DNA of 63,032 nt, the filler included, from Lenisia limosa (Eukaryota; Protista; Breviatea), in the NCBI GenBank assembly GCA_001655205.1. It is 17 parts of 17 records of this genome, joined end to end, with 100 filler letters (N's around TTAATTAATTAA, not from the genome) between each part and the next. Parts side by side here need not be neighbours in the genome. Positions count along the whole stretch, not along the records: positions 1 to 7,013 come from LPNZ01003265.1; 16 more parts are not named here. The stretch is one strand, 5' to 3'. Under the pieces are notes generated by a model, which was not told the origin of the DNA, did not search any database, and was given only the letters and a program-made list of their open reading frames with translations. A program made the translations under genes and the position numbers. Below are positions 1 to 7,013 of this stretch, one piece after another. How positions within the stretch are numbered: position 1 is the stretch's first letter; the number at the start of each line of letters is the position of its first letter.

Positions 1-222
1 GGGGAGAGGGGCGAAGAGAACTGTGGGGTATTAGATCTGTGATCTATTGCCCTTTGTTTTCTATTCTTTACATTCTCTCAAGCCCCGCGCGCCTCTTCTC
101 ATACCGTTTGATATTTTGTTGTTGCTGTGACTTAGTCTTTCAATTTTGATACTGCAGAGTTAATTTTGCTTTTTTTTTTATTATTATTATTATTGTTTGT
201 TTCAATCTTGTTCCATTTTTAC

Positions 223-279
223 CTTTGATTCTGGGGTTTTTTTGTTTCATAAATTTTCCTCGCTTTACCCCCCCCCCAG
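223..279 (+). repeat. Family B 3' tail acting as splice acceptor
   Basis: TTGATTCTGGGGTTTTT.GTTTCATAAATTTTCC..TTTACCCCCCCCCCAG, immediately followed by a PIPK exon. Confidence 0.8.
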
Positions 280-1315
280 ACTGGACTGACGCGGAGTAAT
301 GTGTCACTCCATGCCGGGCTATGTCTTTTGACCGAGGCTGGTGACTCAGCGTTCTGCGAAAACGAAAAACGTGGGGGGGGGGATAATTTATATCTATGCA
401 ACAGTTTTCTATTAACTGTTAAATGTTTTCTGTCTACTTCCTACTTCCCATAATGTAACTCGCAATAAATAGTCACTCACTACACCCATGATATTGACAC
501 TATAGTGGATCCTGAGGAAGCAGATTCGCATACTTGGCAACCCAGTATCTCAAGAGTGGTTTCCAGCGCTGACGGCATGACCAGATACCATCTTGGCCTT
601 ATTGACTTGCTACAAGTGGGGGGGGGGGGACGCGGNNNNNNNNNNNNNNNNNNNNNNNNNNNNNNNNNNNNNNNNNNNNNNNNNNNNNNNNNNNNNNNNN
701 NNNNNNNNNNNNGTATTGCTAGCCAACAGAATTGTTTTTGGCTTCTTTTTTTATTTGTTTCATAATTTCCAATTTTACTCCCCTAGCGATATACGGTACA
801 AAAGAAGGTGGAAAGATTCCTCAAGAAGGGCCTTTTACGGGAGGTTTGCAGCCATATTGTCAATATTGCTTAATCTATCGATAATATTCTGTATTTTTGG
901 GGGTTATTGCTCTTTGTTGCTACATTTCTCTGGTTATTGCTCTTTGTTGTTACATTTCTCTGGTTATTGCTCTTTGTTGTTACATTTCTCTGGTTTATGC
1001 TCTTTGTTACTACATTTCTCTGGTTATTGCTCTTTGTTGCTACATTTCTCAGCTTTTACTTCCATGCATCTTTTGATAATAATGCCAAAATACAATTCAT
1101 TTCTATTATTCTGATCTTTCTTCGTTCTCCATCCAGCATTCCAATCTATTCAAGCCTTGCCGCCTCGTCACTACCAACAATCATTTATATAACACCCCAT
1201 CCATCGTTTACATGACCCGCAGGCCGAAACAACATCAACTTCACCGGACCAATACGCTGCCCGATTTCTGCGGTTTGTGGACGAGGTCGTGGTGGAAGCC
1301 GAGGCAACAGTGTAG
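280..1315 (+). CDS. Phosphatidylinositol phosphate kinase (PIP5K/PIPK family), C-terminal exons; 5' part outside window
   Basis: Exons 280-370, 506-615, 787-843 and 1223-1315 join in frame via GT-AG introns to ...YHLGLIDLLQ|RYTVQKKVERFLKKGLLRE|AETTSTSPDQYAARFLRFVDEVV...*. This matches the PIPK motifs YxxGIIDxLQxY, KKxExxxK and SxxxPxxYAxRF. Confidence 0.85.
616..786 (+). mobile_element. Family B copy apparently forming a whole intron of the PIP-kinase gene
   Basis: GT-G-run-GGGACGCGG (B head), an N run, then GCCAACAGAATTG...TTTCATAATTTCCAATTTTACTCCCCTAG. The flanking exons join in frame (LQ|RY). Confidence 0.7.
902..1050. repeat. 30-bp intronic minisatellite, 5 copies
   Basis: Unit GGTTATTGCTCTTTGTTGCTACATTTCTCT, within the last PIPK intron. 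Confidence 0.9.
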
Positions 1316-1600
1316 ATTGCTGTCGGATTTGTCATTCGGCCGCAGTTGGATATGGTTTCTTATTCTGATTTTATGGTTAATGTAACATTATATTTAATTT
1401 TTCAATTTGAGGGTGACCAAAAAGGGGGGGTGCAGCTTGTTTGAGATTGTATGGTATTGTTGTTCGAGCTCGCCCTTGTTCCATTTTGAAAACAACCTCA
1501 TATCTAATAACGGGTAAATCGCAGGGGAAACGATGAATCAAGGAAGAGAAATAAGACAAGAAACAAAGCCCTATCTTAATGAGGGCTTCTCACCATAATA

Positions 1601-4600
1601 CTAAAACACAGTGTCGAAATCGAAGGTGTTCGAAGATGCTGCGGTTGGCTCAGTAAACTCAATGTCTCCAAAAGCATCGTTCTGAGACTGGGTGAGGAGG
1701 ACATCGAAATGTGTAACACTCTAATCTTCTCTCCAGAAAGACAATATGATATGATAATATCTTTTGTAATAAGTAATTCACATCATATAACCCACCAAAA
1801 CCCTAAGATATACTTCCCCCCCCCCCTAATGACAAACACAAATCNNNNNNNNNNNNNNNNNNNNNNNNNNNNNNNNNNNNNNNCCATCATTATTCATCCC
1901 TAATGAAATACTCCCCATTCACCTGTTCAGCTTTCTGCTGGTTGCAATTGGGAGAGTCCGAAGAAGTGGGGGCCTGATGTATGAGACGGAAGAAGAGTGC
2001 AATATATGGACAAGGAAGAATTTCACAGTAAAGACGTACTTATGTCACACAATGAATAAAGAGAAGAAAAAGGAGCAAATGTCAGCAGCAATTTCAATCA
2101 AAGATAAACAAAAAAAAAAAAGAATAAACCTGCAAAAAGCAAACCAGCAAATCTCCAAAGCCAGAAAACATGTCAACGCTCGATTTGGAAACTTCCTCTT
2201 TCGTCCCGAAGATATCCAGGTCCTGTGTGGCATAATCAAACGCAACGGGCGCGGCCGGGGTGGATGGCGAAAAGGTGATGTCTTCAAAGAGGTTGTTCGG
2301 ATCTTTTGGTGCGGCGGCAACAACAGGGGGTTCTGGGGGGCTCATTACTGCGGGCTGGGCGAAAACAGTAAATGTATCCAGGGGTCCCGGGGCGATAGCC
2401 TGGCTCGGAATTTGTGTTTCAGCTGGGGTTTGGAAGGGGTCTGAGGATTGCTGGGTGAAAATATCGGCAGAGTTGGGTGGGGGGATGGATGAAGATTGGG
2501 GATGGAAGGAAGGAGGGTGGGAGGGGACTGAAAACGGAGCCTTCACATCGACTTCGGAGAATATATTCCTGGGGGTCTGAGGTTTCGGCACAAACAAATC
2601 TGCGGATGGCTCGGAAAAAAGGTTCGTTACTGGGTCCGGATGTGCCTCTTTTTGAGCTGAAAACAGGTCCGAACCTTCGGCCTGACCAATGGGGGGTGTG
2701 ATGGCTGATGATGGCGATTCTGGCTTGGTGAGTGAGAAACAGCTGAAAGCTCCGGGGGATTCTGGGGTAATAGAGGAGGAAACATTGTCACTCAGAGCTG
2801 TGGGGAAAAGGTCCTGTTTCTCCTCCGTTTTGGCTGTTTTTGGAGCGAAAAGGTCGTTGAAAGAGTCTTTGGAGAGATCTGGTGATCCAGTGGGCACTAC
2901 GGGCGAGGAAAACAAATCCTCGTCACTAGCCACCTCGGGAGCCGCCGAGGTTGACTCCTTTTCAGGAAGGGGAAAGAAGGAGTTCAGATCCGCGGCCGAA
3001 ACCTCCAGCCCGACTTGCTCAGCTGACGTTGAGGGCTCCGTGGCGGCTTGGTTTAATGAGTTGGAACTGCCATTTTGGGTGGCGGTTTGGCTGGTGTCGG
3101 TAATGTCAGAACTGTGGATCGTGTCGGAACTTTGAGGCTGGCTGAAGAGGGCAACCGGTGTGGCCTCGGTGGAGGATGAGAACATGTCTGTTGTTGACTG
3201 CTCGGATGAAGACTTCGGAACTGCATCGTAGTCAAAATCTTCCGGACTGAGGTCGGAATGCTTCACGCAAGGCTTGGCAAAATCAGTGAAATCATCACTT
3301 GGTGATGATGAGGGTTGGGCGAGTGACTGCGTGGTGTCCGTCTTTGCGAAGAGGTCATCAAACGATCCGATCGGAGTGTCCGAAAGGGAGGCTGAGAAAA
3401 ACATGTTGGGTGACTCGATGGAGGATAAGACCTCCTGCGAAGCGAAAAGACCGTCAAAGCTAGTTTCGGGACTGGTGGGAGAGAAAAGGTCCTTTTTACC
3501 ACCTTGAGGCTGCGTAGCGAAGGGATCCTCAGAGTGAGCGGGTGGAGCGGATTGGGATGAGATTTCGCCTTTGTTAATATCTTCTTGGGAGGAAGCAGGC
3601 TCGGATTGAATAGGGCTGGGGGGGTCAAAATGAATTTCCTGAATAGTATCTCAAATATCAATGTTCCGACTCGCACGTTTATAGAGATATTATTATAGTA
3701 CAATTGATACATACAAATATAAGTAAATTAATATGTTAGATTTCACAAGGGTTATACATCAGAATCCAAGCCCCTCAAACACTATTGAATCATCATTAAT
3801 GTCTTCAACAGGAGCATCACCGCTGGAGGTCTGAAACATCAAGGCTAATAAAGTATGTACTGTATGCGAAACGACAAAAAATAAAAACAATTCTCATATG
3901 ATATTTCTGGTTGGAAAACCAATACGTGAAATATATACAACCATGCCTACAGGAACAGACGCAAATGAACCGTCAGTAACGTTGTCAGAAATACCGGAGC
4001 CGAATACGGCAAAAGGATCAGTGTGATTGTCAAGGGGTGTGGGCTCGGACTGGGGTGTGGGTTTGGAAGGAACAAGGGTGGTTTTGAAGGCCGATGATGG
4101 CGAAGGGACTATCGGTATGTCAGCTGAGGAAGACGGACGTTCGGAGGATTGGACAGAGAACAGTTCGGAAGCCTTCGGAACTGTCGGTTCGGAAGTGAAT
4201 AAATCAGACTCAGGCGGCGACGATGAGGCTTTGTTTGCAGCTAATAGGAGGGTTACATTGAACTGAAAGGAATCTTCAGTATTTTTAGGCAAAAAGATAT
4301 CCGGAGATTTATTCAAACCTGAGGATGCAGGAGCTGCAGCTGTGGAGAGGGCTTCTTGTTTTGATTCTTCCACAGGTGAGGATGTTTCATCGTCTTCAAA
4401 AAGAGAAATATCTTGTTTCCGAGAGGAGAAGAGATCATCTTGTTTATCTTGAGAAGGGGAGAAGAGATCACCTTGTTTCTCTGGAGAGAATATATCATCT
4501 TCTTGCTGTTTCTCTGAAGAGAAGATGTCCTCCTGTTGATCTTGAGAAGGGGAGAAGAGATCACCTTGTTTCTCTGGAGAGAATATATCATCTTCTTGCT

Positions 4601-5840
4601 GTTTCTCAGTTGAGAAGATGTCCTCTTGTTGATCTTGGGAAGGAGAAAAAAGATCACCTTGTTTCTCTGTAGAGAACTTATCATCTTCTTGCTGTGTCTC
4701 TGTAGAGAAGAGATCACCTTGTTTCTCTGTAGAAGGGGAGAAGAAATCTTGTTGATCTTGAGAGGAAGGGAAGAGATCTTGCTGCTCTATTGAAGGGGGG
4801 ATGGCATCGGTAAAGGAAGTTTCATCAAATGGGCTTGCCTCCTTGCTAAACAAATCAGGCCCCTGATCAGCCTCTTTTACAGCGAAAACACCTGGCATTT
4901 CCTCTTGGGAGGCAGCAAATACGTCTTCGTGACTGGCGAATAAATCATGCGAATTTTTTTGCTGGAACAAATCAGCAGCATCATCACCCTCGGTTAACAA
5001 GTTGGAGTCCTTCGACGGCGAAGTGGAGCCGGAGTGGTAGTTGTTCGGGGCTGTGGAGAAGGGATCCCCGGAAGCATCGGGGGAGAACGGGTCAATATTC
5101 TCGTTGGAAGTGGAAAAGAAGTCTTGGTCCTTCTCGGGAACTGAGGAAAATGGATCTTGGGCGGGAGTGTCAGAAAAAGGGTCAATTTGGGGTGCGGGGC
5201 TGTCAGAAAAAGGGTCAACATTATCCACTTCCTCGGGAGTTTTGGACAGGCCGAATGTTGATTCCGGGGACCCGGCAGACTCCGGCGAGGCAAACTGCAG
5301 GTCCATGCTGGATGCGGATGGGATGTCGAGGTTTGACGCTCCAGCAGAGTCAACCGGCATGAGAATGGAGGTCAAGTCAAACGGCAGTGTCGAAGACGGC
5401 GGCGTGGGTGAGGAGGCTGGGAGTGGATCACTTTGCATGAGGTCAATTAGACAACTTTGATCTTGTGATCCAGTTTGGGGGGTAGAAATCGAGGGGAGCG
5501 CCTCTCCGAAGCCCGCAAAGGGGTTTTCGATATCCATCGGGTCAGCCTGGATGGATGGTGTTTCAATTTCAACGTTCTTCAAGGGGGATTCCAAAACAGT
5601 CACCTGTTGCTTGGGGGGCTCTTGAACGGATTTGGAACCTTCCTCTTTTGGAAGTTCCGTTTTAGGCATTGAAGGCACCTCCTGAATGGAAGGGACGCTT
5701 AATGGACTGGGTGTTGGCCGTGCCGGGAACTGGACTGGAACAAACGAGGGTGTTGGCGACCTTTGCGGCCTTTGCGTGCATGAATTGCGTCGTGCAGCTG
5801 GGGGGTGAGGGCGACATATTTTAATATTTGTACATATCAT
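1601..5840 (-). CDS. Very large acidic Ser/Pro-rich low-complexity protein with dozens of DPF/DLF/DIF/FxxF motifs (endocytic accessory/adaptor-binding-like); multi-exon
   Basis: ORFs 3894-5840 and 2094-3404 plus linking exons (about 3405-3620, 1915-1975, 1601-1710; stop TAG at 1601-1603). Repeated DPFS, DLFS, DIFS and DFF motifs in a disordered background. Confidence 0.75.
4400..4740 (-). repeat. 93-bp (31-aa) coding tandem repeat
   Basis: EKQGDLFSPSQDQQEDIFS(S/T)EKQQEDDIFSP, about 3 copies. Confidence 0.85.
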
Positions 5841-6049
5841 ATCTCATCATAAAAATAACTAAAAAAAGGCGCGAAGTCCTTCCTCGTATTTCTCCCATTT
5901 CACATCTCCACTTTATATAACCAAAATATGTTCTAGTGTGCCCTTCCTCCCACTACCCCCCTCATTTGACATGCCCTTCCTCCCACCAGCACCCCCCTCA
6001 CATAGTAAATGAATGATTACGTATCAAACATAGCCCACATACACACATT

Positions 6050-6505
6050 CATCAAACACCAAACCCACCAGCGTCTCTGAGGACAGAGCGAGTCGGCTGG
6101 TAAGGTACGAGGTTGGACAGGACAGCCTTGGCCTCGCTTGAGGGGATCGTCTCTGAGTAGACGTTCTCATTATTCCTGGAGGCGGCGGATAAACATTTCC
6201 ATTCTGACTGGGTGGGGAAAATGGAAAATAAATGAAACAAAAAAACACAAAACACCCACGGGTTTGAAAACAACAACAAATCCTTGGTCAACTTTCAGGT
6301 CAAAACACTATTAATTATATTTTGGGAGGGAGGGGGAAGTGTTAGCACAATATTTCCAATATTTAGGAACATCCTCCCAACAATCCCTCAAAGTTTCCTC
6401 TATACCCACATAAGGAACCCGCAGGATATGCAGCGATTGATGCTTTCAGGTGAGCAACAGCTACAATTCGGACAAGTGACCACTTTTGCGTTCCTGAGGA
6501 TATGA
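6050..6505 (-). CDS. Exons probably upstream of the DPF-rich gene, including a Cys-rich zinc-ribbon-like segment
   Basis: Acceptor ...ccccacccAG at 6208-6209 precedes ENVYSETIPSSEAKAVLSNLVPYQPTRSVLRD. 6410-6500 reads ILRNAKVVTCPNCSCCSPESINRCISCGF (CxxC...CxxC). Linkage to the DPF gene is inferred. Confidence 0.45.
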
Positions 6506-7013
6506 GAGGCTTTGTCATACAGTGGTTATGCTGAATGTAATAACTTCGGAGCCCGATGAAAAGCGTATTTATTGAGAAAAGAATTGCAAGATTCATGGCC
6601 ACAGCCAGATATAAACTATTTCACATTATATTTATTTTCACATCAAACAAGAAATGGATTCAGCCGATTAATAGGCGCTATTTGATACGTGATGTATGCC
6701 AGTCAATTGATATGATAAGTAATAAATAGGCGACGGTTAACATTTGATGTGGAGAGATAGAAAAAATTTATTTGTCATTTGATAGGTAATAGTCAATTTT
6801 AGGGTTCTCACTTAAAGTTATTTGCCGAAGTCATCCACTGTCTTCTTCCAATAGACTTCAGCTCTGCAAGTGTCAGAATATGGAAAAGTTACAGTATGTC
6901 AAGGATAATGTGTTGATATGATCAAATACTGTATATGAAACATTTTATGTGTCAAAGATATGATGGTAACAGGGCAGTTAAGTTGAAGTTGAGAGGTGTG
7001 GGGGGGGGGGGGG

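Follow-up and report, generated by a model that had tools for sequence, protein, structure and literature searches.

Introners are transposons that generate introns, and they are known from Micromonas, Aureococcus, dinoflagellates, fungi and other lineages (Gozashti et al. 2022, 10.1101/2022.06.06.494994; PMC12130899). They are recognised by a similarity between introns that sets in close to both ends, no more than 10 intronic or 5 exonic bases from the 3′ boundary and no more than 10 intronic bases from the 5′ one, and a family comprises at least four introns in non-paralogous genes; secondary insertion into an older intron is named as the main false positive (Gozashti et al. 2022, 10.1101/2022.06.06.494994). 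Many introner families possess neither target-site duplications nor terminal inverted repeats. The introner-like elements of Dothideomycetes, attributed to van der Burgt et al. in 2012, are reportedly multi-copy introns that decay fast into introns of ordinary appearance. MITEs and SINEs can enter introns as secondary insertions, and elements of the Alu type donate a pyrimidine tract plus AG. The G triplets of short vertebrate introns are G-run enhancers, and in teleost introns (GT)n and (AC)n stretches mediate pairing of the intron ends.

The intron considered here, at positions 616-786, interrupts a gene of the breviate Lenisia limosa (assembly GCA_001655205.1). The window, that is the whole stretch of DNA that was analysed, comprises 63,032 nucleotides in 17 joined parts, the first of which (LPNZ01003265.1, positions 1 to 7,013) contains the gene; all positions are counted along the window. 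The stretch is found in two sequencing runs of one public study: a DNA-like run (X1), where 98% of its sampled words are present, and a poly-A metatranscriptome run (X2), which contains 55% of them. Contigs of both runs were placed on positions 1-4400. The X1 run may be the source data of the window, in which case its contigs represent a second assembly and not an independent sample.

The last four coding exons of the gene lie on the plus strand at 280-370, 506-615, 787-843 and 1223-1315. The exon at 280-370, which is open in frame 0, would encode the variable loop ahead of the IDLLQ motif, and X2 record 9 spans it (279-370) and runs on directly from 370 to 506. The exon at 506-615, present as a piece of an RNA contig, ends in translation with ..YHLGLIDLLQ (..GMTRYHLGLIDLLQ); the exon at 787-843 (RYTVQKKVERFLKKGLLRE), also seen in an RNA contig, opens with RYTVQKK..; and the last coding exon, at 1223-1315 (AETTSTSPDQYAARFLRFVDEVVVEAEATV), is followed by a stop. 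This last exon matches positions 269-287 of 288 of the Pfam profile PF01504 (PIP5K) with an E value of 0.13 and 12 bits, against a cut-off of 27, and its top three matches in the PDB are all C-termini of PI5P4K gamma, with E values of about 1.7. Searched singly as short queries in Pfam, PDB and Atlas, exons 506-615 and 787-843 gave no match, and with the 36-aa exon as query an exhaustive HMMER search brought up four repeat proteins, all unrelated. In collections from which this genome seems to be absent, word searches with a minus-strand exon and with the ORF 505-633 gave no match, and exact look-up of three ORFs found no record.

A motif G-(I/L)-I-D-(I/L)-L-x-x-Y...KK just before the C-terminus, here IDLLQ.Y...KK.E, is a hallmark of PIP kinases. 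Judged from this motif and the weak matches of the last exon, the host would be a phosphatidylinositol-phosphate kinase resembling types I and II, seen here near its C-terminus. The exon at 787-843 places 19 residues between IDLLQ and AETTST; in human PI5P4K gamma there are 20 between IIDILT and AEISTV, the AEISTV stretch having been seen in the PDB match. On this reading the exon would bridge the motif and the C-terminal block with the gain or loss of at most one residue, and the protein would have gained nothing. The gene is dense in introns, with four of them within its last ~130 codons; the literature on PIP5K intron positions and the IIDIL motif yielded no residue-level map of PIP-kinase introns. 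The intron that follows the exon at 787-843 (844-1222, GT..AG, with an RNA joint recorded as 841>1221 with a cut at +2) includes at 902-1050 a tandem repeat whose 30-nt unit is present five times (93% matches by TRF), and the DNA contigs break there.

The intron at 616-786 is genuine: it lies in phase 0, is spliced out and measures about 142 nt, against a written length of 171. The original prediction had described an intron with 77 N and a CCCCTAG end that splits IDLLQ/RY cleanly in phase 0, and direct reading bears this out. The donor GT (616-617) is followed by a G run of 12 letters (618-629), which had been counted as 14, and by ACGCGG (630-635), so that the head at 616-635 reads GT + G12 + ACGCGG; the 77 N occupy 636-712, and the visible tail ends AATTTTACTCCCCTAG with the acceptor AG at 785-786. 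In the translated frame, codon CAA (613-615) closes at 615 and codon CGA opens at 787-789, and removal of the intron keeps the frame ..IDLLQ/RYTVQ.., as is the case for a spliceosomal U2-type GT-AG intron. X2 record 9, a poly-A RNA contig of 568 nt, joins 370 to 506, 615 to 787 and 843 to 1223, each time with GT..AG, with zero extra letters between and with 55-92 nt on the shorter side. The joint 615>787, which the original prediction had proposed to confirm by RNA, skips 171 positions, is unambiguous and has 55 nt on its shorter side. Because the RNA joins 615 to 787 with nothing between, the intron is spliced and the gap conceals no exon.

The assembly gap at 636-712 does no harm and overstates the length by about 29 nt. 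X1 record 1, a DNA contig of 2,081 nt, is collinear with 1-783, and its sole difference is 29 letters fewer within the N run (recorded as '684 left out 29'). Since this spanning contig is 29 letters shorter, the two sides of the gap are continuous, the hidden part amounts to about 48 nt and the intron to about 142 nt. The contigs resolve the N run, as had been suggested at the outset, in its length and continuity.

The visible 3′ 74 nt of the intron (713-786), which form its 3′ half, are a copy of a multi-copy repeat of this genome, with the core TTTTTTTATTTGTTTCATAATTTCCAATTTTACTCCCC followed by TAG. Evidence for the repeat comes from the read contigs, the similarity among the tails of the window being marginal when taken alone (they score 18-19.5, where shuffled sequences average 14.9 and reach at most 18). 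Of 59 X1 contigs placed, 34 lie only partly on the stretch, a count elsewhere given as about 50. Their summed depth is 17.6-42 over most of 1-4400 and peaks at 1,017 in the bin 148-294 and at 270 in the bin 736-882. The value at place 765 is 1,055, and the 5 contigs that contribute 713 of this have one extra T. Hybrid contigs switch between 225-279 and 732-786: some match the window as far as 738-750 and then pass to 236-242, others match it as far as 251-259 and then pass to 746-766. Other loci therefore have the tail unit, together with sequence leftward of 738. The core is near-identical over ~40 nt in many contigs, the other genomic copies diverge upstream of it (loose ends before 237 agree only to 0.53), and three contigs run from the C run (783) into AAAACCAAACAC.. 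rather than into AG.

The unit occurs four times in the window, at 713/727-786, at 225-279, as an inner unit at 155-224 and on the minus strand at 6208-6262, and the copies have in common the core TTTTTTTGTTTCAT(A/T)(A/T)ATTTTCC..TTT(A/C)C, after which comes a C run. The 3′ part of the upstream intron (155-279, depth 1,017) is made of two units in tandem, the inner one and a terminal one, and ends in C10+AG. As this intron has two tail units and is more than 279 nt long, units and introns need not correspond one to one. Its donor and the exon before it lie beyond the left edge of the piece, which itself begins GGGGAGAGGGG; the inner unit includes an (ATT)n stretch, and within the piece the summed DNA depth is highest at 155-279. 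The third terminal copy, at 6208-6262 on the minus strand, ends CCCCACCCAG, at an acceptor predicted by the reading frame of exon 6069-6207 on that strand; the RNA check covered positions 1-4400. Scans with Rfam and for tRNAs gave no match, and the tail is therefore not a known RNA gene. A scan of metagenomes with the tail core returned 15 matches, all at bacterial gene starts and all dismissed as chance; scans of viral contigs with the tail and with the head gave one chance match and none, respectively.

All three terminal tail copies are flush at an intron acceptor (279 and 786, both RNA-confirmed, and 6208, predicted), and all three are in the sense direction, across two unrelated genes on opposite strands; the endings are C10+AG at 279, CCCCTAG at 786 and CCCCACCCAG at 6208. 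The acceptor at 278-279 is confirmed because X2 record 9 starts at 279/280 with 176 nt of an upstream exon that is absent from the piece, the RNA contig continuing from that exon into 279/280. Homopolymers are placed in a similar way: among the four G or C runs of at least 10 letters within 1-4400, three stand against a splice site confirmed by RNA and have the polarity that fits it, namely C10 before AG 278-279, G10 after GT 371-372 and G12 after GT 616-617. Three of four would arise by chance with a probability of about 2e-8 (the authors' arithmetic, from ~7-8 fitting places per 4,400 and ~1.7e-3 per run).

One of these runs belongs to the neighbouring intron at 371-505 (phase 1, RNA joint 370>506, GT..AG), which opens with GT+G10 (373-382) and ends CACTATAG. 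This intron has no repeat tail, is single copy with a flat DNA depth of 17.6, and its sequence diverges from that of 616-786 after the GT+G run, so the GT+G run is not tied to the tail. The exon flanks of the two G-run introns, AAC/TGG and CAA/CGA, are unlike proto-splice sites (AG/G); given such flanks, the splice signals reside in the intron. Weaker forms of the same ends occur elsewhere in the window, as donors in GTGAATGGGG and GTTTGAGGGGC and as acceptors in C7AG at 3616, CACCCCCCAG at 5798 and CTCACCCAGTCTCAG at 1682, and in three of the seven complete introns the ends are ordinary (GTTTGC.. or GTAGGC..). When the N letters are held unpaired, the predicted fold of 616-786 pairs G 617-624 with CUCCCCUA at 778-785. 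In fold energy the complete introns are no different from shuffled sequences, and for this reason end-pairing is an idea and not a result.

A large convergent gene lies at 1520-5797 on the minus strand, with RNA-confirmed exons at 1520-1681, 1923-1973, 2145-3615, 3781-3830 and 3951-4400+. Its product would be long, of low complexity, acidic and rich in S and P, with many DLF, DPF, DIF and NLF motifs that recall, as an impression only, the clathrin/AP-2-binding motifs of endocytic adaptors; it matched no Pfam family, and a homologue search gave no match. The gene contains 3.5 copies of a 93-nt (31-aa) repeat at 4426-4748. Two minus-strand introns, at 3616-3780 and 5798-6068, end in C runs before AG, the former in C7AG (RNA-confirmed) and the latter in CACCCCCCAG (inferred); that at 5798-6068 also includes a 33-nt direct repeat at 5939-5994. 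The minus-strand intron at 1682-1922 holds the second gap (1846-1883), which is 21 nt too long by the DNA contig, and inside it 11 consecutive C at 1816-1826, which are G on the coding strand, precede TAATGACAAACACAAATC, a sequence loosely like the one (CCCCCCCAAAACCAAACACAAGG) into which the C run passes in tail copies elsewhere in the genome. An open stretch at 6400-6500 on the minus strand (..VVTCPNCSCCSPESINRCISCG.., CxxC-x10-CxxC) resembles a small zinc ribbon, gave no Pfam match and may be an upstream exon of the minus-strand gene. The piece itself ends in G14 (7000-7013) directly before the next gap, and all three right-side gaps or edges of its contig stretches adjoin G or C runs, so that the runs or the repeat probably broke the assembly.

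The intron at 616-786 is a fair candidate for an intron made by a transposon. An introner-type origin is the best single reading of it and is given about an even chance of being right. The repeat makes up the 3′ half of the intron and possibly all of it. The original prediction, that the intron appears to consist entirely of one element, is supported for the visible 3′ 74 nt, where depth, hybrid contigs and the flush acceptor identify the repeat; it is conjectural for the hidden ~48 nt and for the head, which shares only its G run with other sequence, and shares it with the tail-less intron 371-505. No second copy of the head beyond the homopolymer was found in the window, where only the GT+G run recurs, at 371-382.

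The repeat carries a YTNAY-like branch site (TTCAT or TTTAC), a stretch rich in T and C, and at its end a C run directly before AG, and with all of these inside it the repeat supplies the 3′ splice signals. In the proposed mechanism the most likely origin would be a gain of the introner type, in which an element bounded by GT plus a G run and by a C run plus AG inserted into continuous coding sequence. The head and the hidden middle would belong to the same element as the tail, this element would have made the intron, and its G run and C-rich tail may pair and draw both splice sites together. The fullest version of this scheme is an introner family with homopolymer ends, GT+G(n) and C(n)+AG, whose inserts bring both splice sites, pair them by a G:C clamp and split a conserved kinase motif with neither a proto-splice site nor a target-site duplication, the Q/R intron being a recent case; taken as a whole, this version is doubtful. 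A search for target-site duplications at the joints 370>506 and 615>787 found none ('both' = 0 at each, and the sequence was read).

That the G run and the gap are an artefact of assembly or sequencing, which has brought together two sides that are not truly adjacent, is the least probable account and is rejected here. The idea draws on three gaps or piece ends that adjoin G or C runs (636, 1846, 7014) and on the chance that the DNA run is the same data as the source of the window. A separate contig build nevertheless traverses both gaps collinearly, the RNA joint uses precisely GT 616 and AG 786, and the runs at 268 and 373 stand in gap-free sequence, flush with confirmed splice sites; the RNA joints together with the DNA contig that spans the gap are the grounds for its rejection.

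Two further readings accept the intron and its repeat and differ over how they came together. The intron may be old, a short mobile or duplicating repeat of a MITE/SINE-like or minisatellite-like kind having entered later or replaced its 3′ part, as a passenger and not as its maker. Such a history is possible, if somewhat unlikely, and would suit the tandem tail units inside the long intron that ends at 279, the heterogeneous flanks of other copies, some without AG after the C run, and the lack of a detected target-site duplication; in a gene whose last ~130 codons are interrupted by four introns, no single intron position is remarkable, and secondary insertion is the main source of false introners according to Gozashti et al. 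A passenger would nevertheless be expected at random depth and in either direction, whereas each of the three terminal copies sits right at its AG in sense orientation, and a strong new acceptor arising inside an old intron would mis-splice the conserved kinase motif. The other reading takes G-rich 5′ ends and C-rich 3′ ends to be a property of introns throughout the organism, due to its splice signals or to homopolymer slippage, and supposes that the duplication of introns, gene conversion or reverse splicing, and not a DNA transposon, distributed the shared tail as a common 3′ module. The weaker G and C forms at the donors and acceptors of several other introns in the window agree with this, as does the failure to find a target-site duplication. 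It is nonetheless improbable, as three of the seven complete introns have the ordinary ends GTTTGC.. or GTAGGC.., and a loose signal would not yield a core of ~40 nt that is near-identical in many contigs. Introner-type gain keeps the preference given to it above.

If the whole intron were one element and orthologues lacked it, the locus would offer a clean case of a transposon-created intron within a motif conserved across eukaryotes, and homopolymer ends flush with both splice sites, if true, would provide an element with splice signals of its own in an uncommon manner. What is secure goes less far: a real intron, a harmless overlong gap and a 3′ half that is a genome repeat.

Set against the definition of introners, the 3′ side of the locus agrees, as the tails at 225-279, at 732-786 and at 6208-6262 on the minus strand align up to the C run before AG. 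At the 5′ boundary, 616-786 and 371-505 have only GT+G10/12 in common and then diverge; of the other two tail-bearing introns, the heads fall beyond the piece or lack a defined position. The window contains three tail-bearing introns in two unrelated genes, and many further tail copies, which may or may not be introns, are present in the DNA contigs. The hallmark of DNA-transposon-type introners is not seen, the only feature resembling an inverted repeat being G12 against CCCC or C10; because many introner families lack both target-site duplications and inverted repeats, membership remains compatible with this. The literature on poly-G introners yielded nothing usable.

Like introners, the element at this locus is a short repeat that reaches a splice site in the sense direction, in unrelated genes and in a short intron, with splice signals inside the element and exon flanks that do not form a proto-splice site; unlike them, the likeness seen here covers the 3′ part plus a 5′ homopolymer, and no target-site duplication was found. 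The Dothideomycete elements are reportedly also multi-copy, have neither target-site duplications nor inverted repeats and have a predicted structure; they are said to be similar over their full length when young, and in contrast to them no excess fold stability is seen here. The T/C-rich end of the repeat, able to act as a 3′ splice signal, and the tandem or nested copies in the longer intron (155-279) recall MITE, SINE and Alu insertions, but a flush position at the acceptor in three of three cases (279 and 786 RNA-confirmed, 6208 predicted) is unexpected for such insertions. As in introns with end-pairing or G runs, the donor-side G run and the complementary C-rich stretch on the acceptor side could bridge the splice sites; unlike the vertebrate and teleost cases, the homopolymers of 10-12 letters here stand directly after GT or before AG, where their function is putative.
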